A DNA stretch of 64,000 nucleotides from Basidiobolus meristosporus CBS 931.73. Taxonomy: Eukaryota > Fungi > Basidiobolomycota. The stretch covers positions 124,001 to 188,000 of the forward strand of contig MCFE01000039.1 in the NCBI GenBank assembly GCA_002104905.1, in the 5' to 3' direction. The position numbers and the translations under genes were made by a program. Below, piece after piece: positions 34,708 to 64,000 of this stretch. The first letter of the stretch is position 1. Each line of letters opens with the position of its first letter. The notes below the pieces were generated by a model. It worked only from the letters and a program-made list of their open reading frames with translations, was not told where the DNA came from and did not search any database.

Positions 34708-36820
<2,113 letters not shown>

Positions 36821-37438
36821 GGTTCTTGGCACTAAATACGAGTGGTTATCGATCTGCTTTATAGTACAGCTAGAGAAGGAGATATTTGAAGATACAGGAT
36901 AATAAACATTAAATCAGTATCTCCATAAAAGGAGTAGCACGCAGATATCCCAAAAGGAATGAGGAGGTTTGGAGAGGTGCTTTGTGGTTCAACAAGTATT
37001 TCGGTTGATAATGGAGCTAGAGAGTAGAAAGCCATGGAATAGGGCGCTAAAATAATGGGGACCTAATTTCCGCTTGTCCTTGACCAATCTTCCATGTATA
37101 TTGAAAACCATAAAACTCCGTCAATGGCCAATAGGAACAGATGTGTATTTTTGAGTCTTCAAACAATACCAGTTTCTCGCAGCAGATCAGGGCGATAGAT
37201 TCCAAATAGAAGCCCCATTTTCTGTTGCCCATCGCTGCCCAACGTGGTACCCAATTTGTATTTCCCTTAACGCACAACCAATTAAGCAGATGCCAGTCCC
37301 TTCTCACGGGGCTAGTTGAACTTCCATATTAGTGCTTGTTGATCAACTGATGCTAAGGCTGGGTAGGCAGTAGATTGTGTGTAGTAGGTTAACTTTGGTG
37401 ATTTATTGAGATATTTGCCAGTGAGATATGCTAATTAA

Positions 37439-39951
37439 CAAGTAGAGATTAGCCCAATCGGACCAAATGGTCCGATTGTATTTAAATTATTTTGACCTCA
37501 TAGCAAGGATATATGAAGTCTAAATGAAGTTTATGAAATCTCTCTGGTATGCACTTTGTGCTGGTATTTTGATTTTTTCAAAATGGTTGCAAATACTTTG
37601 TCTTATATTGCCTTTACTGAAGCAACTTTTGGCAAATTTTAATCGGACCAAATGGTCTAACACTTCATTGATGAATAATGGGTATGGCTTTAAGCAATTA
37701 TATTTCAAACATTTAATAGCCAATCCTACTAACTGCGAAGAATTATTGAGCATTATTTGTTTTTTCATATACCACCTTCAAGTGCCTGGTATAGCAGTCT
37801 TTACACATTGGGTGGCCAGGGTTGCAACTGCATGAAAACTCAACCTTAGTGCCTGTAACATGAGCGGCAGTACAAGTTTTGCAAGCTAATCTACGGCGCT
37901 TTGAGCCATAACCTTTACTCATCGACAGGTAAGTGTGATTTTCATCACTTCTGAGTTGCCTCTGACTACCCAAGGGCCCCTTGATGTCTGAACCGGCCAA
38001 ATTCTTACAATATTGCAAGAAATTGTATGCTAAAATATCCTTGAAAGAGAAATGAGATACGCCACGCTTTTGGTAAGAAAATGTACGATAAGAGCTATAG
38101 GCATTGGCTTCGCAGATACCCAGGATGAAGCCGTAGAAACGCATCTCCCATCTTTCTGTAGATATAACATCATGATAAGATGTCAAATTATCTCGAAGGT
38201 TATTGGCAGCATCAACCGAACCTACAAATATAGTAAATGGAGCACATGTTGTTTCTTCAAGACAGGATTCTACTTACTTTTATGGGTCTCATATTCTTCA
38301 ACCACTTCCGGTCGCTGAATGGTTATCACCTCACCATTGTCCCCTACAAAAGTTCTCCGTCCAGTAAGCCTTGTTGTGCTGCAAGAAGAAATAAATGCTT
38401 TGATCTTGTAATCACGGTAGGCGCAGACAAAGATTCTCCCGCTCCTTGTTGTCTTGTTCATAGTAAAGTGAGCACCATACAAGTTGCCAACACTGGCAAC
38501 AATATCGGTGGTGGGCATACCACATGGCCAGTAGCAGCGCTTAGTCACTTGCATAATGGAATACAGACCAAGTTCAGCCAGCATCATTGTCATATTTGGG
38601 GATCCGAGCCAAGAGTCAGCAATAACGGTACGGCCAGTACCAAACCAAGGCTTGACTAATCGCTTGACAGTGGAAGTCAACTTGGACATACCAGGATCAT
38701 TGTCATATTCCTTCTGTAACCAATCACTCACTGTATCTATTCTCAGGATACAAGCAGTGTGATGGTCTGCTAAAGTCTTGAACTCCTGTCCGATGGGATG
38801 CGGCTTCCTTGGAACTTTCTTAACATTGGGCAAACCAGCTCCTAACCATTGATTCATTGATTCGTCAATGACTAAATACTTGCAGGGCTCTAAACAAGTT
38901 TTCATGTGTTCATTAAAGGCGTCAATAGTTGATCTAATTTGATAAAGAGCATCGATTTCTTGATGTTCTCGGGAAGGGATTTCAAGAACGTGCATTTTCA
39001 GAATCTCTTTAAATCTTCTATACGACATATATTCCGTAAAGTCAATGTTCATTAAGAAATGAGAAGAGCCTTGCTTCCAGTAAGCTTTTTTGTCGGAATG
39101 ATTGATAACTGTCATTACAGTTATTAATGCAATCCACATCATGTACTCGGCAAATGTAACGTCAGTCCAGGGGCCAATGCTAGTTGCATAAGCATTAATC
39201 CTCCGAACGATAGTGCGAAAGTGATCTAAAGGAAGGAAGAACAAGAAATAATCCAGTGGTGAGGCATTTCTAGCATTTTTCATATTTAACCGAGCTTTCA
39301 AGGAGGTAAAACCATCAGCTGGCCCACTTGTACGGGAATCAATATATACTTCCCCAGTTATCCAGGTGTCTGCTGCAGTAAGGTCAATTTCATCTTCCTC
39401 CTGCTCCTCATCTTGGATTGCATCCTCCAATAGGTCTTCAGTAACAATACTCTCGGTAGTATTAGCAGTTGCAGGTTCAATGTTTCCCAAGGTATCATTA
39501 CTGTTAGTCTTGATATGCTTTAAACAGTTTTGTGAAAGAGTCAATGTAATCCCCGGTACCAGATCCAAAATGACATCATATTTCACATTGCCGTTGACTG
39601 TTGAGCGTGCAGTGGTAACTCCCTTGAAGCTCAAACCAGGTGTATTCCAGTCAAAACGCAGAGATAAAAGTCGTTTGACTTCCTTATGTTTGATAAATCG
39701 CTTGGATACTGATACACGCACATTAACATCAAGATGTTTACTGGCAGGAGGCATGGTTTAAGTCTTAAGAAAAGATAAAACGAATATGACGAATTATCAA
39801 AACAACTCCAAAAAATAAATATTCAGATTCTTGTTTATCAGAATATGATATGAAATAAACAAAGTAAGACACCCATCCAGAAAAAACAATTGTATTAAAT
39901 TAGACCATTTGGTCCAATTTGGACCAAATGGTCCGGCCGAATCTCTACTTG
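37439..39951 (-). mobile_element. Full-length piggyBac-family DNA transposon, 2513 bp
   Basis: TTAA TSD at 37435-37438 and 39952-39955. Perfect 12-bp TIR CAAGTAGAGATT / AATCTCTACTTG. Subterminal palindromic GGACCAAATGGTC(C) at 37460, 37645, 39901 (inverted) and 39921. Contains a single transposase gene. Confidence 0.95.
37743..39754 (-). CDS. piggyBac (DDE_Tnp_1_7-type) transposase, 651 aa, one 56-nt intron
   Basis: Exons 39754-38278 and 38221-37743 total 1956 nt. The intron is GTAAGT...TTTGTAG. Catalytic motifs are LVIDESM, VIADSW and (across the splice) HKSSVDAANNLRDN. Also KKVPRKPHPIGQEFKTLAD and a C-terminal Cys-rich domain CKTC...CSC...CKDCYTRH. Confidence 0.93.
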
Positions 39952-39996
39952 TTAATAATCAATGATATATTCAATATGGAGAATTGGTAGGCTTGC

Positions 39997-42900
39997 TTAT
40001 ACTCGAATTGCCCATGGTTTCTCGCCTTCCTGGGGCACAATTCTAGAGAGTGTAGCAATCTCATCGCTACTGGCCATACGGATTTGTTCAGCAGTGGCGG
40101 GATGAGCAAGAGTGAATGTCTCAGTGTTGCCGTTGTCTTTGCGGGCAGCAGAAACAGCATCACGAATGGCATAGTAGACGGAGGTACCAAGGAAGAATGG
40201 TGGCTCTCCGATACCCTTGCTACCATGGATGGTCTTGAGGTTCTTGTACTCAACGCCATCCAGCAGGTCCACTCTGAATCTCTGAGGAATGTCGCGGAAG
40301 CCAGGGATCTTGTAAGTGCCTGGTCCGCGAGTGAATAGCATTCCGTTGGGGAAGAAGAGAGTCTCCTCCATGGTTGACCATCCAGCACCTTGTAACCAAG
40401 CACCTTCAACCTGACCAAGGTCAATGGAGTAGTTGAGGGATTTGCCAACGTCCATGAGAATGTCGGTGCTAATGATGGTGTGGTCGCCAGTAAGGATATC
40501 GATTTCAACCTCAGACACGGCAATACCAAGGGTGAAGTAGAAGAACATCATGCCTTCGTTCTTGCCCCAAACATAACCGATATCTGGGGTTCTGTAATAT
40601 CCGTTGGCGGAGAGATTCACACGATCAAAGTAGGCGGCCTTGGCAAGCTCAGCGATGCTGGCGTCGGGCATCTTTTCACGGTAGGGTCTCAATCTATCAG
40701 CTACCTGCTCACATGCAGCCTTGACAGCTTGTCCATTAAGATCTGAACCAGCGGAAGCGGCTGTGGGACTGGTATTGGCTACAGTGTTGGTTGCTGTTTC
40801 ATTGATGTAAACCTTCTCAAGAGGAACGCCAAGGGTTTCAGCGGCAATCTGGGCCATCTTGGTATGGATGCCCTGTCCCATTTCAATTCCTCCGTGTGTC
40901 AAGAGAACTGAGCCATCGGTGTAAACATGGACTAATGCACCTGCTTGGTTGAGATGCTTGGCAGTGAATGAGATACCAAACTTGGTAGGAATAATGGCTA
41001 ATCCTCTCTTCTTGAAAGTGTGGGTCTTGTTGAACTCGTCAACGGCCTGGCGTCTGGCATCGTAGTTGGAGGACTCCTTGATCTGCTTCCACATCTTGGG
41101 GATGTGCCAGTCGGTAAGCTCTTGGTTGAAGTGGGTGATCTGACCCTCCTTGTACATGTTGATCTCACGGAATTGGTCAACAGGAATATTAAGACGATCG
41201 GCGACTTCATGGACCCAATTCTCACAAATGATCATTCCTTGGGGTCCACCGAATCCACGGTAAGCGGTGTTCGAGTGGATATTGGTGATACAAGCCTTAC
41301 CAATGGCACGAACATTAGGAATCCAGTAGCAGTTATCACTGTGGGACATGGCACGCTCAACGACAGCCATGGTTAGATCGGCAGACCAACCAGCGTTGGC
41401 ATACACCTTGACATCCAATGCTTGGAGTTTGCCATCCTTGTTGACACCAACCTTCCATCTTCCGAGGAATGGATGTCTCTGTCCGGAGATGAGCATATCT
41501 TCGTCTCTGTCGAGCATGACTCTGATGGGCTTGCGGAGATGGTGGGCAGCAACTGCCATGGGTGCAGTAAGCATGACGGTTCTACTCTCCTTACCACCGA
41601 AACCACCACCCAAACGCTTAGTACGGACAATCACTCTGCTGTCAGGGCAATCGAGGACCTTGGCTACGACGTGCTGAGTTTCAGTGGGGTTCTGAGTGCT
41701 GCTGAAGATTTCAATCTCATCGCCTTCCTTAGGAACGACGATACAGGCGTTGGTCTCAAGATAGAAATGCTCTTGGCCACCGATCTTGGTCTCGCCCTCA
41801 AATACGTGGTCGCAGTTTTTGAATGCCTCGTCAACATCTCCTCGGATGATTTCACGTGGTGCAGGGACAAATGATTCCTTCTCAATAGCTTCCTCGATGG
41901 TGAGAATGTGAGGCAGGTCTTCATACTCCACATTTACCATTCTTGCGGCAGCCTGGGCTTCGTTTTGACTCTTGGCTACCACGATACCAATGATCTGACC
42001 CAAGAAGTATACGTCAGTGCTGGCGAAGACTTCTTCGTCTTGGAAGACTGGACCCCAGGTATTGTTTCCGGGAACATCTTTAGCTGAGTAGAATCCTACC
42101 ACACCATCTGCCTGTAGAGCATTGGCGGCATCGACGTTCAAGATCTTGGCGCGGGCTTTCTTGGAAGTAACCAAGGCACCATAGAGCTCCCCGCTGTATG
42201 ATGGCATATCGTCAACGTAGATAGCCTCACCAGTAACCTGCTTGAGGGCACTCAAATGGGCTACACCCTTGCCGACAACGTTTTCAGGGCGGACGGGCAT
42301 TGATTGGGAAGCTTGGGAAACAGCTCTTTCAATGTCCTCCACCTCATCAGCAAACTTGGATTCTTGGATGTCAAGTCCCAGTTTGTTCGAGACGTTGCAC
42401 CAGAACTTGTAGAAGAAACTTGCTGAAAGAGCCTTACGGAATTCTCCCATACCACCTGGAGAAGAGTACTGGATCGGCAAATCGAAGCCGAGTCTGGTGA
42501 CGACCTCCAAGAAGTCCTCACGATAACCCCACTCCTTACCAATCAAATATTCCATGGCGGATTTGGCTTGGAGGGTAGTTGGACCCATACCTCCGAAGGC
42601 AAGGACTATATCCTTGACGATGAACTTCTCATCGCTCTTCTCAAACTTGACCCTAAGGCCACCATTAGCGATGGCAATATCATCGTCCTTTCTCTTGGCC
42701 TGTTTGAACGATTGCGCGAATTCGTATTCCTTGGTGAAGGGAACGAACAGAGATACCACCACTTCACCTGGACGAAGGGCAGTCTTGCGGTAACCCAGGA
42801 AGAATTCGGTCATCTTGATGGAGCGCAATCCACCCTCCTTGGAGCTTACAACCATTACCGCACGGGAAGAGACGAAGACCGGGTTGAGGTCAGAAATTGG

Positions 42901-44147
42901 TGAGGCAGTAACGATGTTACCAGCAATTGTACCGACGTTTCTGATTTGGCGACCAGCGAACCAGCGAAGGTTGCTAAGATAAGCTTTGAAGTTCTCAGTC
43001 TTTGAAGGTTCGTATTTCTCCACTGCCTTTTTGAGTTCACGCTCAAAGTTGGAGAGGGTGATGTTGGCACCGAAGGTGATACCTTCCTCGCTATACTCGA
43101 CCTTCTTAAGCTCTTCGATGTCACTAACATAGATCATCACAGGGTAGTAGATCTGCTTGAACTTGATCTCGATCCCGACTTCGGAGTTACCGGCGATGAT
43201 CTTTGCGTCAGGGTATTCGGCCTTGAGCTGCAAAAGCTCGTCGAGTTCAAGAGGACGGTACCACTTGTATCTGTTATTGGAGAATGCCAAGGGCTTGAGT
43301 CCGCTAGCTCCTTCCTTCTCCTTATCGCCTTGTGCATATTTGATAAGTCCGGGTGGGAAGATCAACTCCTGAGAGGGGTCGTACTTCTTGAGCTTAACCT
43401 TCTCGAACTTGTCGTTGTCAACGGCAAAGTTCAGTTTGTCATCGAATTCCTTCTTGTCCTGGCAACAACCGCCTTCTTTCCCGCAGCCCTTTGTTGCTTC
43501 TTCCTTGATGGCTTGTTGCTCCTGGTCTTGGCAGCAGCCTCCGGCCTTGTTGCTGCCACCACAGCAACCGCCAGCTGGAGTGGCAAAGGTTTTGGCGGCA
43601 TCCAAGATGGGTCTGTAACCAGTACAGCGGCAAAGGTTTCCGTCGAATGCTTCTTCGATATCATGCTCGCTGGGGTTAGGGTTGTTTCTCAAAAGGGCGT
43701 AGAGAGACATGGCAATTCCTGGAGTACAGAAACCACATTGTGACCCATGGGCAAGGGCAATTCTTTCCTGAACAGGATGGGGATTTTTGGCGTTTCCAAT
43801 TCCTTCAATGGTAATCACATGTTTACCGTCCATGGCACAAAGAGGAGCCAGGCAAGCGTTGGTCGAAGTGTGAGTGATCTTCTTGGTCTTTGGGTCGTAT
43901 GAGGAGACCAGGAGTGTACAGGCACCTTAAATTGAAGAGAGGTCATATTAGTATTGGCTCCGTGTGCCTTTGCTTCACTCTCCTTTAACTTACCACAACC
44001 ACCTTCACCACATCCAAGCTTCGTTCCAGTAAGCCCGGTGCCACGAAGGTATTGGAGAAGTGTCATCTCGGGATCAGGATTTTGCAAAACGATGCGAGTG
44101 CCATTGACGTAGAATGTAAGGATGTTGGAGTAACTTTGAATAGACAT
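39997..44147 (-). CDS. XDH: Xanthine dehydrogenase, 1360 aa, one intron (43993..43926)
   Basis: [16 protein letters not shown] and [11 protein letters not shown] (2Fe-2S), [14 protein letters not shown] domain ([15 protein letters not shown]), and Moco domain ([37 protein letters not shown]). Confidence 0.98.
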
Positions 44148-44488
44148 GATCCTTAATTGATGCTGAAGTCAAATACAAATGCAGTAGTGAAGTGCAATGG
44201 AGAATGAGATGCAATAGTTAAGTGTGATTTGGAGGAGACTTTGAAGCCGAGTATATATAGGATTTTACTCGGCAATCTCAGACGATTATCATCGACACAA
44301 AACTGATCGATATCTAACAACCGACTTCTCCACAACTCCACAGCATTCTTTTCCCGGCCGCTATCCGCATTATCTTCATTCCAAAATCGATATGGGGTAC
44401 TTGGGTGAGTATGCGATTTCCCAATCGAGAGCTTGGAAAAACCGGAATTTGTAGTTAGCAAATCTATAGCAACCTTCATTCTGGCAAT

Positions 44489-44515
44489 CCCCCGCTCCCC
44501 CGCTCCCTCGAACCC
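44489..44515 (-). promoter_or_regulatory. Canonical G-quadruplex motif upstream of XDH
   Basis: The minus strand reads GGG-TTCGA-GGG-AGC-GGGGG-AGC-GGGGG (plus-strand C tracts at 44489-93, 44497-501, 44505-07 and 44513-15). Function is not shown. Confidence 0.4.
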
Positions 44516-44959
44516 TCCTTCCTATGCTATGGGAATTGTCTCAGCTGGCTTTCACGTCACATGAAAATTTTTGTTCTACTCTTTCGGGTTGCTGCATCAG
44601 CTCATGTCACATGGCGGAAACTTGGAAATATTCATTGGTGACCGAGAGATACATCATTGGCTCAATTACAGGATACACTTGGAATGACGACCTGTGGTTA
44701 ACTGATTGACGTTCATTGAATTTTACTTGGCGCCACACGGGTATTTACTTGGATGAATGTTTACTAATTTGGTAGCATTGATGAACGCAAAGATAATCAA
44801 TCGTTTTTTCTCACACTGGAGGCTCCAAGCGTATTGGCTCGTATAAATGCTCGAGAGTTAGTTGTTATGCTATGCTTTTCTTCTACCTGGAAGGAGGCGC
44901 TCATGTTGAAATGTGGTATTGTGTTGTGTTTATTTGGGATGTGAATGCAAATCAAAATT

Positions 44960-47900
44960 TTACGAGTGCTCGACCTGATTGAGGAACGCTTCATCAACTC
45001 TTGCTTCAGTCGAAGCCATGAAGCGCCGCTTGGTCCATTTGTAAAGCTCTGATAGAGTGATGAAGATCAATGCGTCGGCGGCAACTAGTCCCCACTCCCA
45101 AGAGATTCCTTTGTGTCTGAAGACGGTGGTGTTCAGCCTATCAAAGAAGATTCAATTAGCCACAAAGCTGGGGAACTCTTCACTATTCGGTAACCTACCC
45201 TGGAATATAGATGCATGGGAATAAGAGTAAGAACCCGGAGATGACACTCCAAAACAAGAACCGGTTGGAGTAGATATCTTTAAGCTGTGCCCATGTCCAT
45301 TGAGGGCTACGAAGGGAACGGCAATTAAAGCAGTGGATCAAAATCAGCACGGTGATCGCAGCATATGCCGCAGCTCGACCTCGGTAGATTTCCGCGCATG
45401 AGTCACTGTACGTCTGGTTACAGTTTCTCCCAATCTCTCCGGAGCCGACCACGAAGACAACCAGGACGAAATTAAGAAGTGATAACAAGCCCATAACACA
45501 GCCATACAGGATGTTGTCTAAAATGACTTCGAATGTGAAGAGTCCACCAGAGTGGGGCTTTTGCCGCATGATTTCAGGAGTGGCTGGTTCCATTCCTAGG
45601 GCCATGGATGGAGGAGTGCTGATAAATTCGTCTAGGTATCACTTCAGAAGGCTAGCCTAATAATTGCGAGGACTTACCTTGTAGCTAATGTGTAGAACAA
45701 GATCTGGACTGGGGAGAGAGGGTACACTGAAGACCCTTGGTCATCCTTGATAGCAAGCGCTATCATCAACACCAGGACACATGCCAGATTTCCCGATAGC
45801 AGATTTTGAACAAACTTAATGAAGTTGGCGAAAACTCTACGTCCTTCAGCAATAGCACCAACAATCGTGGCAAAGTTGTCATCGGTCAAAATGATATCTG
45901 ATGCTTGTTTGGCCACATCTGATCCCGCCTTGCCCATAGCTATACCAACATCCGCAATTTTAAGACTAGGCGAATCATTCACACCATCTCCGGTCATCGC
46001 CACGATTTTCTGGCGTCTGTGGAAAGCACGTATCATCTTCACCTTTGTATTAGGACTGCATCGTGCGATAACTCGAGGAAGCTCCGGTAGAGCGTCAATC
46101 TCTTCTTCGGTCAAGGAATCAAACTCTCCTGCAGTCATGACTAGTCGCGAGTTACTTCTTTTCTCATTAGTCGCTCCTTCGGGTGGTAGGATGGCTACTT
46201 CACGAGCAATAGCTTCAGCTGTGGCTGGATGATCTCCAGTTAGCATGTGGACTTGAATTCCAGCTTGATAACACTTGAGGACTGCAGAGCGCGATTCCAA
46301 GCGTGGTGGGTCATAAATTCCCCCCAATCCAACGAAAGTAAAGCCTTGTTCAATGTTTTCACGAGTCCAAGCTGAAGGTCCGGATTTCACCATCTCTTCA
46401 TCAAGAATTCGATAGGCCAAGCCCAAAACACGCTAATTTGACAAATCTTATGAGATACTTATCACCTATCTACGCCTATCAAGGGTAACTTACCAATCCT
46501 TGGGATGCCATGAAGACTATTTGAGGCTCCAGCAAAGACTCCAACTGTTGCTGTTCTGTGGGTTGTTCGCTGTCCCCATACTTAACTTTAGTGCAACAGC
46601 CAATAATACGTTCAAATGCACCTTTGAGATACACAATATATTTCCCAGTACGCTCTTCCTTGTATATGACACTCATTCTCTTGATAGCTGATTCGAATGG
46701 GAACTCCATAGCCAGTGTATATGTATTGGAAGGATCGGCATCAGTGGTATATGTTGGTTTTCCGCTATTTAGTTTGTGCGCAAAGACTTGAAGAGCAGTC
46801 TGGAATAGATACATGTCACCATCAGTAAAAATAACGCAGTACTTGGCATTACAAAAGAACCCAACCTCAGTAGGGTCACCGATATTAATCCACTCCTTTG
46901 AGTTATCGTCTTGCTTAATCATGGCCATGTTACACAGAGCAGCCGTCTCTACTAGTCTTTGGATAGGGCTGGGCATATTCTCGGGAGTAATTATCATTTC
47001 TCTTGCACTGTCCACTACATTGACACCATCCTCTTTTATCATCTGAGGATCAAGTATCTTCTTGTCACCTAGCCGAATAATGCACCCGGTAGGATTGATA
47101 CCAGTTCCCGTAACGTGATAATAGCCGCTTTCAGGCAACCAAAAGCGGGTCAATACCATTTTTGCTTGAGTTAGTGTTCCTGTCTGATAGCACAATGTCA
47201 ATATCGTAGATCTCTACTGAACAAGGAAATCGGTGCTTACTTTGTCGGAACAGATATTCGAGATTGATCCCAAGGCTTCTAAAGATGGAAGTTGACGAAC
47301 AAGGGCGCGCTCCTTCGCCATTTTCCGAACACCAATTGCCATAGTGAATGTGACGACTGCTATCAGGCCACCTGGAATGACAGCAATCCCGATCGAGATG
47401 GCGTACACAGCAATACTTTGATTGATTTTGAAACGGTTAACCGCAAAGACAATAAGAATAAAAATGATCGCCAGGAGAAATAGAAGATAGGCCATTTTAT
47501 CCAAGCTGAAACGCAGTTCAGTTAATATAAGCTTAGAGTAAACAAGAGTATGACTAGTACCTTTTCTGCAATGGTGTTTTACCAGGTTTGTTGTCGTTGT
47601 TGGCAAGTTCCTGCGCAATCTTCCCAATTTCGGTAGTCATACCGGTACCAATAACTATTCCCCTGCCACGACCCCTCGTCACACTAGTCGAGGAATAAAC
47701 CAGATTTAAACGGTCGCCGATTGGCTCGTTTGGATCTAGGATAAGATCGATACTAAACGATTTCTTAGTCTTCATGCATTTCTTTATCCAAGACACGCTA
47801 GTGAATTTACCTCTTAGTAACAGGCACTGTTTCGCCGGTGAGCAGCGCTTCATCACATTCCAGATTAGAGATATCAAAAAGACGACAGTCTGCTCCAATC

Positions 47901-48429
47901 ACGTCCCCGTTCTCGAACGATAAAACGTCACCGGGAACAAGTTCGCGGGTTGGGATGGTTGTGAACTCGCCGCTCCGGAGGACTCTACAGTTAGGTGAAG
48001 CCATCTTCCGCAAAGATTCCAAGGTTTTCTCTGCCTTGTACTCCTGAAAGAAGCCGATGGTTGAATTGGTTATGATGACCAAACCTATGACGGCTAACGC
48101 AACAAAAAAATGTTAGATGTGCCAGTACGTTTGTGAATCCTTCCGCAAGACTTACCTCCTTCGCCGTAATTTCCTCCCGCTGAGAAGGCTATAGCCATGG
48201 CAATAATTAGCACTAGTGTCAGTGCGTTAGCAATCTGTCGGAACAGGACTCGAAAAGCACTGGGTCCTCCTTGGCCGGACATTTCGTTTGGGCCGTATTT
48301 CTCCAACCGCTGCTTTGCTTCATTAGTGGTAAGGCCTACTTGAATATCCGTTTCTAGTGTGGACGCAACATTTTCTTCGGTGTATGTATGATATGGTATG
48401 CTTTCCTGTGTTTGACCGGGCGGTTTCAT
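44960..48429 (-). CDS. ENA1: ENA-type (P-type IID) Na+/K+ efflux ATPase, multi-exon
   Basis: [11 protein letters not shown]-like [27 protein letters not shown]|[56 protein letters not shown] (the SPSL variant typical of type IID) and WEWGLV. An in-frame upstream ATG near 48612 makes the start uncertain. Confidence 0.93.
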
Positions 48430-49195
48430 ATCGGAATGAGGAAGGGTGGAAGAGATACTTTTGGGTGAGATCACAAGCCCATATCTTCTAGCTATATATT
48501 GTTTTACCAAGTGGTTGGATACTCTTTGGAGCGGGTTTGAATGATTAATAAAGACGAAGAGTCCTTTTGGATGCTGTTTGGATGCTCTTTGGATCCACTT
48601 CTGAGTGCCCATTCGGGAACTTCTCACTATATATGGGAATCACGACACAATTTTGAATTGATTTATAGATCTTCAACATAGCTGAAAGTTAATCAATTGG
48701 CTAAATTTCAACCATTTTCCGAGTTCCTTTTTCGGGATAAGAAGGTTTTTTGCCACAGGTGTTCCATTTCATTGCCAGTAGATGCCCTTATTTGACAATG
48801 GAACTTTACACAGAGCGATGATGTGTAACGCAACATGTAATATATCTTAGATGCTGGCAATTTATGCTGTAAGCTTGGTCGAGGGCCTTGTTTGCACCTT
48901 AAATTCACATGGATTGCTCTTACTTGATGAGCAGATGTGCGGAACAGTCCGAACGTACAGTAGTGTTGTGGAGGACAGCATGCATCAATATCTTTCATTC
49001 AAGCTCTCCTCAGTGAGTATCGAGTAATCTATCCATCTGCAATGGGGAATGTAATTCCCTTATATCCCCTTACAGCATTCTCGATTTGTTCGGTTGGAAC
49101 TTTGGCCTGTTTCATAAAGATATATAGCGGGTATTGCACTCATACACCTGGCTAATTATACTCCTCACCCCAAGTTTTGTTCGATAGAAGTTAGA

Positions 49196-50268
49196 ATGAC
49201 GAACTCCAAAGATAAATTTTACATGATTCGCGCATCCCTATTACGAAAATCCGATCAGGAGGTATGGCGCGCCGTTCTTGTCCCTAGCTCCTTCTCCTTG
49301 CTTCAGTTCCATGTCGTACTCCAAGATCTCTTTGGCTGGAAGGAAACAAGCGGGTCATTCCACTACTTTAGTCACGGGAAGATGGAACACAAGGTGTATC
49401 TTGAAGAAGAGATCTTTTACCAACATCGCAATTTCCACGACTGCCCAGAGATTGTTTATCAAACTATATATCCGGAAGAGTGCGATGGTTGGGTAAAGCG
49501 AATAGGACCAGGCCTTTACATCGGTATGACTGCTGGGCTGGTTTGTTGTCTTGATATGTTTAGTAAACATCTTTGCTTGTCTTGTAGAGCATACACATCC
49601 TCACGATCCAGCCCCTTTATTTACCGTAAACCACGAACTAGCCGTTACAAACGACGAACTGACTACACGAATTCTCCGCGACGAGAGACTGTACAAAATA
49701 CATCACGTCTTTGATCTGTTCCCGCATCTTTTTTACGAGTTTGATCATGGTTTGGACTCAGTTCCTAGCTTCCGCCTGTTGCTTTCTTTTGAAGAAACCA
49801 TTATCTCTGCCCCGGACGACTTCTCCACAGACTACTCTCTTTTCCCAGTCATCATAGATGGGCAAGGGGAGTGCGCTTTGCCTTTTGAAAAGCAAGAGGT
49901 TTTTCAACTGAATTCAATGCAAAAGCGTCTGAATTGCTCCCACACAGAGTATAAGCAGGGTGATGTCAACAAGTGCTATTTGTGCCACCGATTTTGAATT
50001 TGATTGCCCAAAATCCAATAGTAAGTGTGCTCAGCACTCTTCAGAAACCTGTTGCGCTTATTGTATCTGCAACCCTGATGTAAAAGATAGCGAGCCCTAC
50101 GAACATAATCTCAGTATGCTGGCTTGGGAGCAAGGCCTTATTGCATTGAACGCCGAAAGGGCGAAGTTCTTAGAGGCGATGACCAATGGAGATGCATTTC
50201 AATGTCACTGGATCGAAAACGATGGAGGTTCATGCGGCTTTTGCCATAATATTGGCATGAACTGTTAG
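49196..50268 (+). CDS. pRiA4b ORF-3 (MM3350-like) domain protein with Cys-rich C-terminus
   Basis: FYMIRASLLRKSDQEVWRAVLVPSSFSLLQFHVVLQDLFGW matches the pRiA4b ORF3 N-terminal motif. Intron 49524..49587 is in frame. FYEFDHG and PVIIDGQGECALP correspond to YEYDFGD and PRC..G...CPPE. The junction near 49949-50021 needs a second intron or an indel. Confidence 0.65.
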
Positions 50269-50601
50269 AAGCGAATTTTTTATTTATATTTCCTCAATAA
50301 ACATTACAGCAGATCTATTGCATTCCCTTATGCTATATTCTCTCGATGCTACGCTATATTTCCTCGATGCGTATTACAGGCTCTACTTAATATTGCTTCG
50401 TTAGGCATTGCATTATTACATCAACCAACGCACCTGGATTACGGGATGAGATTATGCATGCCTACTCTAATGCAGGGCAGTCCAGTGGAGATGTACTCTG
50501 CTGCAGCCGACCTTCTGAGATGGTGAGCAATTTGACCGTTAGCTCGGCTTGATCCCTTAACTATAAATTCAGCCTGAGCTAAGCCTGATCCCTCGTCCGC
50601 A

Positions 50602-51740
50602 ATGCTTCAATCCATCTTTCGAAAAAAGTCACCGCAATCCGCCAAAACGCCGATCCGGTCCGCGGTGCCATCTATCACCCAAGATACAGGAGTCCAACGT
50701 AAGTAACCCCTCGTTTCGGGCCGTTACCTAATGGAGTAAATACTGATTTCGATCAGCCGTACCCTTGGGCCAAAGTCAGGGCGAACATAAACGGGCAGAC
50801 GAGCTCCTGCGTAGAAACCAAGGTTGGGCTGATCAAGTGGTGGTCCAGCAGCCGACGATCTTTGAAGAATGTGCCAAGGGTCAACAGCCAAAGATTCTTT
50901 GGATCGGTACTTGATGCTATTTACATACGTATGGCCTGACAAACGCTAACATTTGGTTGAAGGATGCGCTGACTCACGTGTCCCTCCTGAGCAGATCGTC
51001 TCTTGTGGTGAGCAGTCCACAGTTGCACTAGAAATCGGTCGACAGCACTAAAGTATTTTGTTAGCACCTGGAGACATATTTGTTCATCGAAACATCGCCA
51101 ATGTGTGCATCTTCTCGGACTTGAATTCCCTTTCGGTGGTTCAATACGCGGTAGAGGTATTGAAGGTGGAAGAGATCATTGTTTGTGGTAAGATGCCCCT
51201 TTACTATGCTTGTTCAAGGCGTTGGATTCCTAAACGGCATATAGGGCATTACGGGTGTGGCGGAGTTAAAGCAGCCATGGGGAACCAGAGCTATGGCATG
51301 ATTGATAACTGGCTCAGCAACATCAAATCCGTTTATCATAGTAAGTGGCATTCAATTGATCATCCCAAGCATCGCCCACTCAATCAACTTTACTCATTCA
51401 GGTAAAAGAAGAACCCTAGACAGTAAGCTTTGTATTTTCCCTTTTCCTTAGGGCATATCTAATCAGTCATTCTCCAGAGCTGGAGCAATCGGAGCAAGAG
51501 AACCTGATGGTGGAGCTGAACGTGGCCAATAGTGTCAATGTACTCTGCCAAACTCCAATTTTGCAAAATGCTTGGGCCCAAGGCCAGCCCATCACGGTTC
51601 ATGGCTGGAGTTACAGCTTTGAGAATGGAAGAATCTACGATTTAAACATTCAAATCGCGTCACCTAACGATATAGAAAAAGTAAACCAAGAATCCCTCCT
51701 GAACAAAGCTCGCAGTGTAAAGTCAAAGAGCCGAGTATAA
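50602..51740 (+). CDS. NCE103: Beta-class carbonic anhydrase, multi-exon
   Basis: [69 protein letters not shown] and VHGWSY. Confidence 0.95.
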
Positions 51741-53069: not shown

Positions 53070-54899
53070 CTATGAATCAGTGCTGGTGCGGGAAATATAT
53101 TCCTCGAGGGTGCAAGTTTGCTGTTCGCGCAAGTCTGTATTCCGCACCGTAACCTGGTTGTTTTGGAATTCATGCTCCCCGATGAAGACCACTTGGCGAG
53201 CGTTGGATTTGAGTGCCTTTGTCAGGGCTTTGCTCACCGGTTGCAATATATCGGAGTTGGGGTGAATTAACAAAACCTTTTCCCCACGGCCCCTAAGTAA
53301 TCCTGCAACATGATGGGCATAGTAAGCAAGTTCTGAAACGGTAGCTTGAGGTGCAACTGAAGAATCTCCTGCTTCTGATCTCGCCAAGACAATAGCTATA
53401 GGTCGCTTTTCTTGCTCCAAGAGCGAATCTTCCAATAGGAGCGAGAGCCTCTCTATACCAGCAGCCCACCTAACCATGTGGACTGAATAAAGTTGATTTG
53501 ATAATGATTGGAAGTCTTACAAGTTACCCTATACCGGGAACGTTCTTTGGTCCCCCCATTTTCTCCACCAAGTTATCGTATCTTCCACCAGCCAGGATTG
53601 TGCCTTGCGAAGTGCCTAGCTTTTCGTTGGAGCACTTGAACTCCCATACAGTATGGTCGTAGTAATCCAACCCACGGACTAGCTGGGGATTGAGCTTGAA
53701 TGGAATGTTTAGTTGTTTCAGGCCGGAACAAATGAACTCGAAGCGCTTGTTGGACTCCTCGTTGAGATAGTTAAGGATCTGAGGAGAAGAATTGACCACT
53801 TCGATATCTCCAGGGTCTTTGGAATCAAGAACACGAAGAGGGTTGTTCTCGAGCCTAGTGAATGAAGAGATCAGCACTGGTCATTCTACTCGAATCTATC
53901 GACAATACACTTACCTGCGCACGCTATCGGAAGACAATTTCTCGACATTTTCTCGGAGATAAGAAGTGAGAACTTCGCGATATTTGATGCGTGAGGCCAC
54001 GTCGCCCAGGGAGTTGATGTGAATCTAAGCCAATACTTAAGGTGGTGCATTTTTGGCATAATTCTAGTGAGAAGGAAAGCTCACCTCGACATTTTTGTCT
54101 AGTCCAAGCTTCGACAAAAATCTCCAGCCCATCTCGATTACCTCGATATCAGAGGATGGGTGACCAAACCCGAAATACTCGGTACCAAATTGCTCGAACT
54201 ACATCTAGTGTGAATATGTGTTTCTCGTTGTTCAAACCCCGAGCTTACCTGTCTAAGTCGACCCTTCTGAGGCCTTTCGTGCCGAAACATTGGCCCGTAG
54301 TAGTAGAGTTTTTGGGAGGTAGAGTGTGCCAGGCCGTTACTTATCACAGCTCGACAGATACCTTGCCAAATGATCGGAATCGTGTTACGGGGAGTTCAGT
54401 GTATTGCGACCTGGAAGTCTTACCTGCAGTTCCTTCAGGACGCATGACAAGCATGGAATCATTTCTATCTTTGAAGCTGTACAATTCTTTGTTAACAATA
54501 TCCGATTCTTCTCCCAGTGTTCTGTCGAATACGTTCAAAAATTCCAGGATTGGGGTTGAAATCTGTCAATGCAAGCTTCAGTATACGGCTGCGCTGAGCT
54601 ACCAGGCCTACAATTCAAACCTCTTGACAGCCGTATAGCTCGGATACAGAGGAACCAATTTGGCAAATGTGCCTGAATTTTTGACTTTCCAGCCCATACC
54701 GATCATGCATGCCACGTACAGGTCGTAACACTTCTTTCTTGACTTTTCACAAGTTAAAACGTGATGCTTGGTAACGTATGGTATTAGAAGCGACTTGAGT
54801 ACCTTTGGAGGAGTAGCATCTTAGTAAGTGGGAGCGGGCAACAAAGTGCTGTCCCGTTCCACGCAATAGAAAACTCGAGGGAATACCAAGCGGAGTCAT
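53070..54899 (-). CDS. hisS: Histidine-tRNA ligase, bacterial (HisS) type with mitochondrial presequence, multi-exon
   Basis: Presequence [14 protein letters not shown]...LRCYSS. Motifs [81 protein letters not shown] and GIERL. Confidence 0.92.
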
Positions 54900-55140
54900 T
54901 TCTCAACTGCTTGCCGCTATTCTTGGACTATAGTCTAACAAAGACTGTTCATTTGCACTGCACTTTCGATTAAAAATTTCGCATTCACCAGACACCATGG
55001 TATCGATCATCCCAATCATGCAACTACATTGATTTACCATCCCATATATTTTGAGGATTCCTAGATGACTAGCATTTTCTGATTAATATTCGTGCAATAG
55101 CTTACCTTTATTTAAGACTGTTGGGCAACATAGCTTCATA

Positions 55141-58100
55141 ATGACTTCACCACTGACACGGGACGGATGTGAAGTTCTAAGACAACAAGCTCTCGAAAGG
55201 CTCGAGGATTTGACAGAGAATGGAGCTGGCCAACGCGCATCTAATGAACCTGCAACAAACATTCGGCTGCAAGTTATGAGGCTTTTGCGATGTAAGGATA
55301 GTCTGCGATCTTCGTAAAAGACATTTGGCCGGGCCTAAAAAGACAGATTGTTGACTTGTTGCACTTCGTAGATACAATCGATGTTCGCGCTAGATCGTTC
55401 TTCGAGAACGTTGCTCAAATAGAAGATTCAGTCGTAGATATTTTTGATATGGTAGTAAGCGACGCAGCGCACAAGGTGAATTTCGAGGCTGCCTTCTTGA
55501 GAGAGTAAAATATATTAATATGAAGACCATTCATAGCTCAAGGTAGTCCTGTCACCCGAGCTGAATTACTTGATTTACCAAGGCCTGATTTGCGAAAAGG
55601 CAGTTATTGAGGTACATCTCCCTTTCAGAACGCGTCCGTTCCATCGTAGTCGTTTACATATACTTCACTACAGATCCAGGACTGCACGTTAAGATTCCGG
55701 GAGACAGACCTGAGTGCAACTGAAATCATCATTTTGACGAAAGTTAACATATTGGACTACCAAGTATCAAAGTATTATAAGAAAAAGGGCCGCGAGGTTT
55801 GGTTCCTTTTCTAGTGTTGTAAATATCGGATCAATAATGAACGCACTTCAATTCCGCGATATGTAGGATATCAAGTATCTGGTGGAGGCCAGCAATGAGT
55901 TTCTACCGCTCACCAGTCGCCGTTGCTCGTATCTTACCCCTCTGGGTGACGATGATTTTTTGCGTGATGACCACCGTTGGGTTAAGCAAGATCTAAGCAT
56001 GAACAACGTACGCCTATCCTTTGCCATGTTCCAATTCGCCCGGCTCATTGCTATTTACAGGATTTTAGACTGGACCATGCCGGCGTATCTCTTGCTGACA
56101 TCTTGAAGGGTTTGGAAAAGAGCTACACATACCGACCCCCAATTGTTGGGAGGATCATGAAGAAGTCAACAGTGGCGTATTATGGCAAACCCGAGGATGT
56201 CAAGGCGAGTTACCCATTCCAGTTCACCATCAGCATAGGTAAGTTGGGCTGGATATCTTTTGGTCGCTTTTGAATCCTCACCTCTTGCTCTTCTGCTGCA
56301 GCTGATGATACGGCAAGTGTGTCAGTCGTGTTCTGGAATTCGTCATGTCTCAAGTATTACCAGTCGTTGGCAGTCAACCAGATTGTTCAGATCACCGGAT
56401 ACAAAGTGCGCCGTGCCTACGAAGGGAACGCATCAAAGATCGAATTGTCAATCAACCCGAAGAATCCCACTGGAGTAATCGAATCTCTTCAAGGTAACCA
56501 TTGGGCATCAACTTCAGTGGGTCAACAGGCTGTGCTGAACTTTTTGGATCTGTAGACAATAATTTTGAAGGATGGTCTCAGGAAGAGATCTTCTCTCGCT
56601 ACCCTCTGCAAATCCCAAACATCCTAAGCTTCAGCACTCTGCCACAGCTTCCTGACGAAGCGGAGGTAGATATCGTCGGGTGTGTTGTATATGTCGGTCG
56701 ACTAGAAGCCGAGAAGAGAACACCACATGGGTACTTGACGTGAATACATTGGGTATTGGTGCGTTTAAACTAATGCTTCGCGTTGACTCAGGTATTCGGA
56801 GTTTAGATGGATAAAGCTGCTCGATCGAACCGAAAATCAGGAGGTTATTTTAAAGATGTATGCCTGCTCACAATTAAAAGCACTCCAGAGGTTAGTTTCC
56901 GTACGCCCTTCATCGCTCGCTTCTTTTCTTAATCTATAGCTACTCGAATTAGGGTGGAAGTCGGCAGTGTGCTACTGTGTACCCATGCTCACATCAGCAG
57001 CATCACATTAAATTCGGTTACCCCTCGCACCACCTATGCTACGTCTTCATGGTATTCGGAATACAAACTTATCAAGCCTGGTAAACCCTTACCACCTCAC
57101 TTGGACCAGGTTGGCGTCGGCATTGATCAAATATCTGTTATTACTTTAATAATCTCCCCTCTTGTACTAGTATGCTCCCAGAATTTCTGCCAAACTTGTT
57201 CATAATTTTGCATCCAGTAGGTTCCATTTGCGCACGTATATATGGGAACTAGGAATTAATTTACATTGGCTAGGTGGTGGCTATTTCTCTCTACCGACGC
57301 CATTCTCTACCGTTAGGGATTTGCAGCTGTTCGATGCAGACTTCGAATTGACTCCTTTCAAGTAAATTTCCTGTCCCTACCATCAAGTGCTTCATGTTTT
57401 TACAACGGTTCTCGTTCATACTAGCGAAGTGGAAACTTTCTTTGATAGACTGGCTCAACGCGAGCGAATCCAAATCGTGTGCCAGGGCTTCGTACATGGA
57501 ATTCACCTAAGGCCAAACAAAAGAAGGCATGAAGGAGAGACTATGGATCCAAACATACCCGAATTCTCCGACAAATTACCAGTCTCATATGTAAGCTACA
57601 AGCAGCGATTCCTTGATTGTTACTCAATATATATAATATTTCTTTCTTTCCCGTCTCAGAGGCTACAAAATACTTCAATAGATACAGAGGACCCTATAGA
57701 AGGGGCGCTGACTATTAGCTTGGACTTGATCAGCATTAACCGAGATATTACGCTAACGCCATTAATTCTTCCAAACTGTGCAGAGTTTCAAACTGGCAAG
57801 AATCTCCATAGCGTAAATATTCTGGCTCTATTCTATAAAAGGAACGCCACCTTTCCACTGCTAATATACTGGTTTTCAGCAGGATTCCATGTCCTTGTGG
57901 ACCTGGCGTACTTTCTTGACTCTATTTCAGCCTTTTCTACCGAGGGGAGTTTTCAAAGCAGAGCCCCCAGTTGATCGAACTTCGCCTTCAGCAGGTAAAA
58001 TGGAATGTTTCGAAAGGGCGGGATATCGTTGCGTGATAGTAACCACCTTCCTCGTTTAGGAGCTCTTGAAAGTATTACATAACCAGCGTCTGGTTTTCGT

Positions 58101-58173
58101 GCTGGACCTGATACGGTACAGGCCGGAGGAAATTCACTTGATACTCTCCAAGGTCGTCCAAATCACTAGTTAA
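55141..58173 (+). CDS. RADX: RADX (RPA-related RAD51 antagonist)-like multi-OB-fold ssDNA-binding protein, multi-exon
   Basis: Ordered motifs: FDMVVSD, LPLTSRRCSYLTPLGDDD, PPIVGRIMKKSTVAYYGKP, ADDTASVSVVFWNSSCLKYYQSLAVNQIVQITGYKV, IELSINPKNP, VDIVGCVVYVGR, FRWIKLLDRT, KMYACSQ, LLCTH and terminal RLVFVLDL...IHLILSKV*. They are collinear with human RADX as recalled. Splicing near 57813-57994 is unresolved. Confidence 0.8.
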
Positions 58174-58661
58174 TCAGCAAAACCATTGCTTAGAAACTTG
58201 TTTAGAAAAGCATCAATGATCTTTTTAAGGAATTTTAAGCGCAATGCTCATGGCGTACTATAAGCCAATTAAGATAAACGCATTTCAATTGGATTCAGAG
58301 ACAAAGCACTTATGAAAATAAACTGGGCCAAACCTGATGAAATTGCATTAATGCACACGGAATCATGGTTAACGTTTCACAAGAGGCGGTGCCAATGTGC
58401 TTAACTTAAATTGAATTCATTTCTGCATGTTTGGGATGAACGATGAAACATGAAGTCATCTGTTAAGTGCCATTTGACATGTAAACGTAACTTTTCTATA
58501 CTTAGCGCTTTTGCCATGAAGGCGGACGCCATTGGCCAACTGGCTCATTGCATTCCTCCATACAAATGTCATGTGCGTATTATTTCATGATTAGCTTTCC
58601 CAGGAGAATAGGGAACTAAATATAGTGACTTGCTTTATGAATTGGATCTCTACATAAACCC

Positions 58662-60753: not shown

Positions 60754-61973
60754 TCACTCTAGCCCTGTTTGTTTACGACGAATGTGGTCCAGGGCCTGGG
60801 CTGCCTCACGTTGGCATTCCTTATAGCCGATTTTACGAGCGTGGTTCATGGACTGTGTATAGTACTTCATAGCTCCGTCGGTTTGACCACTCATCTAAAA
60901 AACGTTGCTGAGTTGAGGAAATGTTAACCGATGTTTCGAGAAATTCTTACCTCGTAGATCATTCCTATGTTGTAAAGTAGCACGCCACAGCTTTGGTCAC
61001 ATTCGTGTTTGTCGTCTCTCCCGAGACGTGCAACATCGAGACCCTTTCGCGCCCATGCTTGCGCCTCCTTGTATTGACCCATGTTGGCAAAGGCCTCGGA
61101 TATGTTGCACATTATGACTGAGGCGTGGCAGTGTGTCTCGTTCAAGGTGGAGAGTGCACGGATGTAGAGTGGAATAGCGTAGTTATATTTCCCATCCATT
61201 GCATAAAACATGGCCAACGATTCTAGCGAAGCACCAATCTCTGTTGGAGTGATCCATTCGGGGAGCTCAAAGTACCTCCCTGAAGGTAGCTTTTCTGAAT
61301 CACTCTTAACCACCCTATGTCGAAGCAAGCGCTCTACAGCCCAGACATAATATTTTTCCGCCATGCTTCTGGCATGAATCTTTTCATAAAGCTCGCCTAA
61401 CTTTTGGGCAATACCCACCGCGCGGATCAACTTTTCTCCAGCAAGTGGAGTCTCCGTGACGGTTGAATTCAGCCTCTCGTAAGTCACCTCATCAATGGAA
61501 GTTTCCTTGTTCTCAGAGACTAGGAGATCAAAGGCCTTTGTGTAGACTTCGATAGCCTTTTCCCAATTCTTCTGGTCTTCATAGAAAGTTCCAAACTGTA
61601 TAATGAGCCCAGTGACTTCAGAAGAAGTATCTTCTAGTTGCGGACTCTTCAGGGCTAAATCAACTGCTTGTTCATAGTAAGGTAAAGCTCGTACAGGGTC
61701 CTCCTTGTATTTGTGATATAGAAGAGCCTTTCTTAGAGGGCTACGAATATTCGAAGGATATCTGCGCACGCCATGATAATTGTATTCGTAATATGCACTA
61801 CCTAGTAGACCAACCGTGCACAGGGTGAGGAAAGAGGTTCTCAATAGGGAGGAATCGCTTTTCGCCTTCTCCTTCAGTAGATGAGGATATATATGAAGCT
61901 GGCGGGATTTTGTAACGGGATAGGTACGTGTTATAATGCCAGGCCTTCTGAAAGCCACTCTAACCAAATTCAT
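60754..61973 (-). CDS. Mitochondrial inner-membrane TPR protein (Mgr3-like), 2 exons
   Basis: Presequence, one TM segment (FLTLCTVGLLGSAYY), YPSNIRSPLRKALLY and TPR helices (ALPYYEQA, AIEVYTKA, AIPLYIRAL, LLYNIGMIYE). A final exon ends at 60754. Confidence 0.7.
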
Positions 61974-62197: not shown

Positions 62198-62680
62198 TCA
62201 TCTTCCCAGTACCTCGCTTCTGGTGGACTCGGCCGAAGACAGCACCAGCTTCATGATGGGGTCGCTTAGGTTGATATCCTTCATTGCTTTGGCCAAATTC
62301 TTTAGAATCGCATCAAAGTGCTTGTCATTGAAGTCAAGTAGACGCTTATGGGCGGCACGCATGCTCCGGCCATTATATGGCTTGCCACCAAGAATGTGCA
62401 ACAGATACTTGGACATCATCCACTTTAAATGCTCCATATTGACCCCTTTGAAATACTGTTTGATCCGGCGATCACGAAGGTTGTATTTATAAAACCGATC
62501 CACAAGTACTTCGATCATTCTTTCGCTAAATAAGTCCAGGAGCGTCGGCACACTGGAGTGGGTGTAGTTGGGGGTGACATCTTCCTTGTGCCAGTATTCG
62601 GTGACATTGGTAATGCCAAGATTTGCTGCGAATGGACATCCTGTGAATCCCGAAGACGCAAACTGGTTGTTTGGTGACAT
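62198..62680 (-). CDS. Group I truncated (2/2) haemoglobin, TrHb1/GlbN-like, intronless (the ORF is open back to 62830)
   Basis: VDRFY (PheB9-TyrB10), DRRIKQYF (CD1), LGG (EF loop), YNGRSMRAAH (proximal HisF8), HFDAI and AESTRSEVLGR. Confidence 0.9.
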   Translation of the reverse strand: MSPNNQFASSGFTGCPFAANLGITNVTEYWHKEDVTPNYTHSSVPTLLDLFSERMIEVLVDRFYKYNLRDRRIKQYFKGVNMEHLKWMMSKYLLHILGGKPYNGRSMRAAHKRLLDFNDKHFDAILKNLAKAMKDINLSDPIMKLVLSSAESTRSEVLGR

Positions 62681-64000
62681 GCTCACTTTTCTAACTGTGT
62701 CAGGGATTTGAAGTATCTTTATGTACTGGGTTGACCTAGCAAGCTCACAACCCCCTGGATAGGTCTTAGACTGCATCTCTGATCGTTTACATTGAATTGT
62801 CCGCTCAATAACCCGCCAGATCGTTCGCATCGAATTATCCGCTTAATTGCTTATCTACATGGCCGAGATAGAGCTTGTGCAATGGACATATTACGAAAAC
62901 CCATCATTCTCCCTAGTGAAGTGATTGAGACCACAGCAACAAGGTTCCATATCTGAGGAGCAGATGATGAGCGTTGCGAATCAGTGTTTGCATCTTTGTG
63001 CATGTAAGGTGACGATGCTCTTATTATCGATTATTCTAATCCACTATCTCGAATCTAGCGCTGATATTGATTATTCTACAATAAGGTTGTAACGTATTTG
63101 AATGCATGGAGAGAGAGGCTGATGTAGCGTCCATGGTTCGTCCCCAATTCTCATCCTAATTACCAGTGTCTCACGATCTGACTGGATACGTTTCTTTCCT
63201 CAAGGGGTGTGGTATCGATATCGATGGTGCCTACACCCGCCCACACTTGCCACACTTTTCTATCATCGGCAATCGCTATTCACCATCATCACCTGTCACT
63301 ATTCACCGTCACCTGTCATTATCCGCTCACCCCTTAAAATACCAACAATGATGATCGGCCCATTGCGGTCGGTAAATATCTTTATTGACAAACGAACACA
63401 AGCGGCATCCGTGTTAGGAGGTTCCTTCAAGTCTGAGACAAAAGTGTGCTGTTTGCTTTTCATAATCCAAGCTCAATTGGTCATAGCTGTTGACTTGGAC
63501 AGTTACTATGGTGGTGCCATCAACATTACGTTGTCTTCATGAGTCAGTGTGGAGAATAGGGATGCATTATGTAAGGAAATAATAGAATCCATACAAATGC
63601 CGGTTGTCAGCCTAATTGTCTTAGACTATATGTTTGATGCCAGTCCAGCTTTGAATTGTTCGCATTTGACTTGAATGAGAAACATTATTTGAATCAGCGT
63701 TAGGCTCTTTTATACTCGTAATGAGTACTGAAACTATCCACTAGCACGGATAATGTATTGTGTACCTCCGACTAGTTAAAAGAAACAACAGAATCCAAGT
63801 TGAATCCTCGTTCCAACCATCACTAGTGTATTATTCGTTACGATTTTTCTCCCGCCCTTTTGATCCATATTCTCACGTACACTTCGATCAATGCTCTCCC
63901 CACATCAAACACACGCTCATCATCTCAGAAATCTCTATACTCCCGCTATCCATCTGCAGAACGGGGCTGCTAACTCATCTACTCCTCCGCTGACTCCAGT

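Follow-up and report, generated by a model that had tools for sequence, protein, structure and literature searches.

RADX (CXorf57; Pfam family PF17659; PDB 8U5Y and 8U61) has been termed a mammalian protein (bioRxiv 10.1101/2020.05.15.098996), and its yeast counterpart is entered as 'NA' in the table of a 2025 review (PMC12810152). The human protein is reported to share ~20% identity with RPA70 and to lack structurally characterised orthologues. Among the mutated residues of its OB2, W279 and K304 are those that truly contact single-stranded DNA (ssDNA); Q451–K454 in OB3 form the RAD51-binding patch, and OB4 holds a disordered loop at 566–676 (bioRxiv 10.1101/2023.09.19.558089). Here, we describe a RADX-like gene in a stretch of 64,000 nucleotides from the fungus Basidiobolus meristosporus CBS 931.73 (GenBank assembly GCA_002104905.1, contig MCFE01000039.1, positions 124,001 to 188,000 of the forward strand; this whole stretch is hereafter called the window).

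The gene occupies 55141–58173 on the plus strand of the window. We consider it very probable that it is an intact nuclear gene of B. meristosporus whose product is a RADX-family protein (PF17659) of full length, with four OB folds in the same order as in the human protein. It is a fungal addition to a known family, not a new mechanism or a new kind of system.

Gene model and colinearity with the RADX family

The three forward frames of 55100–58250, together with a check of the splice sites, gave a gene of 16 exons and 15 introns, which is more than the roughly a dozen exons counted in the preliminary description of this DNA. The start codon was set at 55141, where the first ATG follows an in-frame stop. 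The introns measure 53–80 nt, each with GT-AG borders, and the phases agree across exons 1–14. The predicted product has ~694 residues (694 codons in model A, the 3′ splice pattern discussed below) and is encoded by ~2.08 kb of coding sequence with no internal stops.

For comparison with the family, a hidden Markov model (HMM; 773 positions) was built from 12 non-fungal RADX-family proteins found among the matches of exon 7 in a large protein collection (described below). It was run on all 2532 stop-to-stop six-frame peptides of the 64-kb window, and matches with E < 5 were kept. The exons are listed here with their HMM matches.

Exon 1, 55141–55291, plus strand: start codon, N-terminal 'PLT..G...L' motif and first OB1 strand (LQVMRLLR); donor GTAAGG.
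Exon 2, 55372–55475, plus strand: OB1, RPA70N-like domain.
Exon 3, 55537–55611, plus strand: OB1, RPA70N-like domain; HMM 65–90, E 0.015.
Exon 4, 55674–55796, plus strand: remainder of OB1, RPA70N-like domain; HMM 85–117, E 0.7.
Exon 5, 55867–56007, plus strand: OB1–OB2 linker with the family-wide motif PL.SRR.SYL....D....W (alignment A1); HMM 142–171, E 4 (weak).
Exon 6, 56061–56238, plus strand: OB2, in which PPIVGRIMKK... begins at 56136; HMM 193–249, E 1.5e-9.
Exon 7, 56302–56493, plus strand: OB2, in which ADDTASVSVVFWN... begins at 56302; HMM 250–330, E 2e-28.
Exon 8, 56556–56730, plus strand: OB3, containing VDIVGCVVYVGR; HMM 325–362, E 1.6e-5.
Exon 9, 56792–56890, plus strand: OB3, containing FRWIKLLDRT; HMM 368–402, E 4e-7.
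Exon 10, 56953–57109, plus strand: OB3; HMM 401–437, E 0.1.
Exon 11, 57171–57216, plus strand: OB3–OB4 connector AKLVHNF; a phase-consistent GT-AG exon whose likeness to human RADX was seen by eye.
Exon 12, 57274–57361, plus strand: start of OB4 (exons 12 and 13 carry GGYFSLPTP and LAQRERIQIVCQG).
Exon 13, 57425–57590, plus strand: start of OB4, then the beginning of a short internal loop; HMM 510–546, E 0.35.
Exon 14, 57660–57871 (model A) or 57660–57812 (alternatives), plus strand: end of the loop and the OB4 strand LISINRDITLTPLILPNCAE.
Exon 15, 57931–57994 (model A; acceptor TTTCAG, donor GTAAAA), plus strand: starts at 57950 in the alternative with a 137-nt intron.
Exon 16, 58060–58173, plus strand: last OB4 strands (RLVFVLDL...IHLILSKV) and stop codon; HMM 739–769 of 773, E 0.013.

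The motifs from which the gene had originally been recognised were found again at 56136 and 56302, in exon 8, in exon 9 (FRWIKLLDRT) and in the terminal strands at 58060–58173. Within the window, the family HMM matched only the RADX-like locus, where ten colinear plus-strand exons cover positions 65–769 of 773. The score of exon 7 is inflated because the family set was chosen with that exon, while the scores of the other exons are independent. As judged from these profile matches, the likeness of the locus to the RADX family lies far beyond chance.

The colinearity is also seen with individual proteins, as the best local matches of the exons follow the same order in 11 homologues. Exons 2–4 align in A1 to the homologues' 'FDVVLSDG..LKCLISPQLN..LRFDET', with their best local matches at homologue residues 49–147. 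Exon 12 has its best local matches in fish RADX at 492–510; exon 13 matches Gefionella 488–547, Capsaspora 601–628 and Siganus 522–544, and exon 14 matches Gefionella 580–602 and Hydractinia 625–684. Exon 16 corresponds to the extreme C-terminus of the family (Capsaspora 852–882 of 885 residues, Hydractinia 672–695 of 699, Siganus 803–833 of 837 and Umbra 822–847 of 853). The predicted protein would therefore be full length, with four putative OB folds in the order OB1 (RPA70N-like), OB2, OB3 and OB4, the last with an internal loop. The matches begin in the RPA70N-like N-terminus and extend as far as the final OB4 strands, and they bear out the earlier proposal that all OB folds, including the C-terminal one, have been kept.

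Homology searches of the gene were run exon by exon. Among the specific families of Pfam, PF17659 ranks first for exons 6, 7, 8 and 9, and these four matches are colinear:

Exon 6: PF17659 228–262, 16.8 bits.
Exon 7: PF17659 268–307, 22.7 bits.
Exon 8: PF17659 359–391, 11.2 bits.
Exon 9: PF17659 400–425, 10.8 bits.

Among 177,635 distinct PDB sequences, human RADX was the sole match of exon 6 (residues 223–263) and of exon 8 (362–392), and it was the top match of exon 7 (8u5y 269–310, E 8e-4), above archaeal RPA chains at E 0.3–0.6. No Pfam family of RPA, POT1 or CTC1 was matched by any exon in these scans. REPA_OB_2 and Rep_fac-A_C were unmatched at E up to 1–10, in exon-by-exon scans that could miss weak matches, and neither chains nor profiles of POT1 or CTC1 appeared in the exon-wise Pfam or PDB searches. 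It had been proposed that RADX, and not RPA1, POT1 or CTC1, is the nearest relative; this holds for exons 6, 8 and 9 (in Pfam for exon 9). For exon 7 it holds in the PDB but not in Pfam, where the generic OB family PF01336 scores higher.

The splice sites at the two ends of the gene were considered separately. At the 5′ end, the codon split as T and AT over intron 1 gives a Tyr. In A1 it falls on an aromatic residue that the family conserves in the first OB1 strand (RRY / FRY / HRF / QRY), and this match supports the splice. At the 3′ end, the only phase-0 partner of the last exon (58060–58173) is a penultimate exon in the frame starting at 55100, with its end at 57994. In model A, exon 14 extends to 57871, where a weak GTTTTC donor is used and a 59-nt intron is removed. 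The first alternative has one 137-nt intron (57813–57949), and the second has an 11-nt microexon at 57880–57890 followed by a 40-nt intron. We prefer model A because its intron length is typical of the gene and because the SVNILALFYKRNATFP that it retains resembles the human SQIDTLLTSMNYSCAYP at this place. The likeness of this segment (57813–57871) was drawn by eye and is weak evidence. Models that pair an acceptor at 57880 with the donor at 57995 were rejected, as a stop is reached in the last exon.

Comparison with human RADX and competing explanations

The fungal protein and human RADX share the order of the four OB folds, and their motifs are colinear from the N-terminus to the last strand, with the linker motif and the C-terminal strands kept. 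On the other hand, direct single-sequence similarity to human RADX is detectable only in OB2 and the start of OB3. The human protein is longer (855 residues vs ~694), and its loop within OB4 is ~110 residues long compared with ~40 in Basidiobolus; the short loop therefore accounts for most of the difference in length. The human sequence through OB3 and OB4 was read from fish-to-human PDB alignments. The corresponding motifs are as follows.

FRWIKLLDRT in Basidiobolus: a 10-letter counterpart in human RADX.
LLCTH in Basidiobolus: FVCTQ in human RADX.
AKLVHNF in Basidiobolus: AKVKNF in human RADX.
GGYFSLPTP in Basidiobolus: GGYYPYPPVP in human RADX.
LAQRERIQIVCQG in Basidiobolus: LQYREQKRIAIQG in human RADX.
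LISINRDITLTPLILPNCAE in Basidiobolus: a 21-letter counterpart in human RADX.
RLVFVLDL..IHLILSKV in Basidiobolus: HIVGILDI..VEVYLHKI(Y) in human RADX.

All the human motifs that had been cited in the preliminary description are present in the 8u5y chain and in the same order, except that the terminal one reads HIVGILDI...VEVYLHKIY rather than beginning with VVGILDI.

Could the fungal protein act on ssDNA and Rad51 as human RADX does? At the positions of human R240, K252, K256, W279 and K304, the Basidiobolus gene encodes R, K, K, W and R, and human R248 and R310 are not conserved. In OB3 (the region of exons 8–10), VTPR was set by eye against the human QVPK (451–454), with the Pro and a basic residue kept. 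However, since the loop is not kept in fish RADX either, RAD51 binding cannot be read from the sequence. By homology, OB2 would be the main ssDNA-binding fold, the protein would bind ssDNA through OB2 and OB3, and it may form oligomers. In the same way, it may limit Rad51 filaments on ssDNA at stalled forks and so oppose a BRCA2-type mediator.

Several points weigh against the assignment to RADX and have to be set beside the evidence for it. The four OB folds are read from sequence, and the gene model from DNA (frames, splice sites and phases), with three in-frame models for the splicing of 57813–57994 (model A, the 137-nt intron and the microexon). Identity to any known RADX member is at most 49%, even in the best exon. 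The gathering score of PF17659 (33.4 bits) is passed only when exon scores are added (a rough sum of 61), and for exon 7, PF01336 beats PF17659 (27.1 vs 22.7 bits). The terminal exons by themselves have no Pfam match (nothing was found with exons 1, 3, 12, 14, 15 and 16), and exons 9, 10 and 16 did not retrieve human RADX when used as single-sequence PDB queries. Furthermore, the RAD51-binding loop differs even between human and fish RADX.

Some of these points would also suit a multi-OB ssDNA-binding protein that resembles RADX only in its generic OB folds, such as a divergent paralogue of RPA1 (RPA70) or a protein of the POT1, CTC1, MEIOB or SHLD2 type. RPA70 likewise binds ssDNA with several OB folds, the first domain is RPA70N-like in both, the Basidiobolus OB2 resembles its DBD-A/B, and RADX is itself a relative of RPA70. 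The 27.1-bit match of exon 7 to PF01336 and its archaeal RPA hits in the PDB fit such a protein, as do the ESM Atlas look-alikes of exon 7, which are generic OB clusters only (SHLD2, RPA and POT1). However, the exons leave the REPA_OB_2, Rep_fac-A_C, POT1 and CTC1 families unmatched, no zinc-ribbon signature was seen, and RADX scores higher in every specific comparison: it is the best specific family over four colinear exons, and human RADX stands above every RPA, POT1 and CTC1 chain of the PDB for three exons. The long matches of the large protein search are PF17659 proteins (nine of ten above the cut-off and one weak). The gene also carries RADX-specific motifs that lie outside the OB cores (PL.SRR.SYL, GGYF.P.P, LP.C.E and the C-terminal strands). 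We therefore regard an RPA-type origin as very unlikely and membership of the RADX family as the better explanation.

A decaying or unexpressed relic, whether a pseudogene with a still-open reading frame or a gene that has lost in-frame splicing of its 3′ part, seems just as improbable. The gene model comes from DNA, the public collection holds no Basidiobolus protein with exon 7, and 57813–57994 is in frame only if the weak GTTTTC donor is used or if the intron measures 40 or 137 nt; but all 16 exons are open and consistent in phase over 2.08 kb of coding sequence, the conserved residues, including the DNA contacts, are intact, other introns of the gene also use weak donors (GTTTGG and GTTGGC), and the last exon is still recognisable as the C-terminus of the family.

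Family distribution, neighbouring genes and origin of the gene

Exon 7 was searched against 1.84 billion representative proteins at E up to 1e-3, and 34 matches were obtained, the best at 42–49% identity. When ten long matches were scanned, nine passed the Pfam RADX cut-off, with E from 4e-16 to 4e-85, and the tenth was a weak RADX match. The named relatives are Gefionella okellyi (a malawimonad), Diphylleia rotans (CRuMs), Capsaspora owczarzaki, Hydractinia (a cnidarian), Schistocerca (a locust) and several fishes; the remaining matches are metagenomic and carry no taxon. No fungus is among the named matches. A word-based search with alignments A1 and A2 (homologues and window exons as rows) returned only the Gefionella protein, a result with little bearing on other fungi.

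The proteins of Gefionella (EP00698_P002180; P0002), Capsaspora (CAOG_07677; P0014) and Diphylleia (P0005) are among the best matches of the OB2 exons, with 42–43% identity in exon 7, and on these exons the scores of protist members equal or exceed those of vertebrate RADX. The Gefionella protein has a similar length (718 residues) and reaches 86 bits over exons 6–7. The three share the linker and C-terminal motifs with Basidiobolus, although they come from different supergroups and are uncharacterised; their public names are 'hypothetical' or 'Replication protein A OB domain-containing'. In a metagenome contig (NODE_885 of ERZ4903303; L002), two open reading frames (ORFs) 3.3 kb apart, 4849–5904 and 9223–9765, both match Pfam RADX, and they could be one eukaryotic gene with a long intron or an insertion.

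The preliminary description had placed the family before the animal–fungal split, and the members in Capsaspora, Diphylleia and the malawimonad Gefionella make this case stronger than it was then put. The distribution supports a RADX family that is older than the opisthokonts. Searches that combined RADX with fungi, early-diverging fungi, Capsaspora or PF17659, under partial coverage of the literature, yielded no description of a RADX from fungi or protists. Judged by sequence, RADX ranges far beyond what the 'mammalian' label suggests, and the family arose earlier than published accounts imply.

In the same collection of 1.84 billion representatives, no Basidiobolus protein carrying exon 7 was found. 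The collection does hold the annotated B. meristosporus proteome, as its xanthine dehydrogenase is present under NCBI, UniRef and EukProt. No match is close enough to come from Basidiobolus although the proteome of the species is in the collection, and the simplest reading is that no publicly annotated model contains exon 7. The RADX-like gene appears to have been left out of the public annotation for B. meristosporus.

Could the gene have come from an animal host, by horizontal transfer or as contamination, and so have no bearing on fungal ancestry? Basidiobolus inhabits the guts of amphibians and reptiles, no other fungal member is named among the 34 exon 7 matches, and the distribution across eukaryotes is patchy. 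Nevertheless, the surroundings of the gene are those of the fungus. The same 64-kb stretch holds a xanthine dehydrogenase ORF (40000–43833, minus strand, 1278 residues) that is 100% identical to the B. meristosporus CBS 931.73 protein, and a housekeeping hisS gene for histidyl-tRNA synthetase lies 241 bp away, head-to-head with the RADX-like gene. This arrangement, which had been pointed out before, is confirmed by a minus-strand ATG ORF at 54899 and by colinear matches of TIGR00442 hisS to the minus-strand exons 54347–54538 and 54141–54347.

Divergent intergenic region, 54900–55140, no strand: 241 bp between the ATG at 54899 (minus strand) and the ATG at 55141 (plus strand); presumably a shared bidirectional promoter.

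The composition of the gene is like that of the window (GC 0.446 vs 0.459), with introns AT-richer than exons, and its 15 introns are short (53–80 nt), as in the neighbouring xanthine dehydrogenase gene, which has ~68 nt of intron. In addition, identity to animal RADX is at most 47% in the best exon, and Gefionella and Capsaspora score at least as high as vertebrates. A recent transfer from an animal is disfavoured because of these OB2 scores on protists, the 15 short introns and the housekeeping neighbours, and we give it very little credence. Vertical inheritance, with loss in the yeast lineages, is the most likely history of the gene.

Other features of the window were noted as well. The xanthine dehydrogenase gene lies at 39997–43833 on the minus strand. 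Its protein is 83–84% identical to a paralogue of the same species on another contig (P0053) and to a B. ranarum protein, and this second copy is consistent with large-scale duplication in the B. meristosporus genome. The xanthine dehydrogenase-bearing NCBI contig MCFE01001264.1 maps to 39952–50655 and 36406–37438 of the window at 99.8% identity. It ends at 50655 and so stops short of the RADX-like gene, which in the NCBI assembly lies on a different contig; the window would accordingly represent a more contiguous and slightly different assembly or haplotype. Between these parts, 37439–39951 is a 2.5-kb segment with a piggyBac-type transposase ORF (38270–39754, minus strand; Pfam DDE_Tnp_1_7, E 3.5e-41). 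MCFE01001264.1 lacks the segment and joins 37438 straight to 39952. This pattern suggests that the insertion is polymorphic between assemblies or haplotypes. The remaining ORFs of note are the following.

23807–29365, minus strand: a single FG-nucleoporin-like ORF of 1852 residues with long, near-identical ASPASTGFSFASKP and APAFGSTTAFGS repeat arrays; the repeats probably also give rise to the long antisense and out-of-frame ORFs that overlap it.
32877–33986, plus strand: a Pex24p-like peroxin ORF that looks like an ordinary gene.
35409–36308, minus strand: a Zap1-type C2H2 zinc-finger ORF, seemingly an ordinary gene.
62198–62830, minus strand: an ORF without introns, whose product has a globin domain of the bacterial-like, truncated kind (Pfam Bac_globin, E 1.8e-9).

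An exact look-up of the downstream ORFs 60927–61973 and 62201–62830 gave no match.

Meaning for the RADX family

A full-length fungal member, together with those of Capsaspora, Diphylleia and the malawimonad, points to an origin of the family before the opisthokonts, and its absence from yeasts would consequently be a loss. The comparison also gives leverage on which parts of RADX are essential, as the OB cores, the linker motif and the C-terminal strands have been kept and the long OB4 loop has not.

A wider proposal is possible, though we put it forward tentatively and with more doubt than confidence: RADX may be an ancient eukaryotic regulator of RAD51 that malawimonads, CRuMs, Filasterea, animals and at least one fungus have kept and yeasts have lost; Basidiobolus may keep a working RADX along with BRCA2-type and PALB2-like partners; and the antagonism of RADX and BRCA2 over Rad51 may be ancestral. 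If this is true, that antagonism would be open to study in a fungus. The finding suggests that, compared with the model yeasts, early-diverging fungi have kept a larger part of the fork-protection toolkit of metazoan type.

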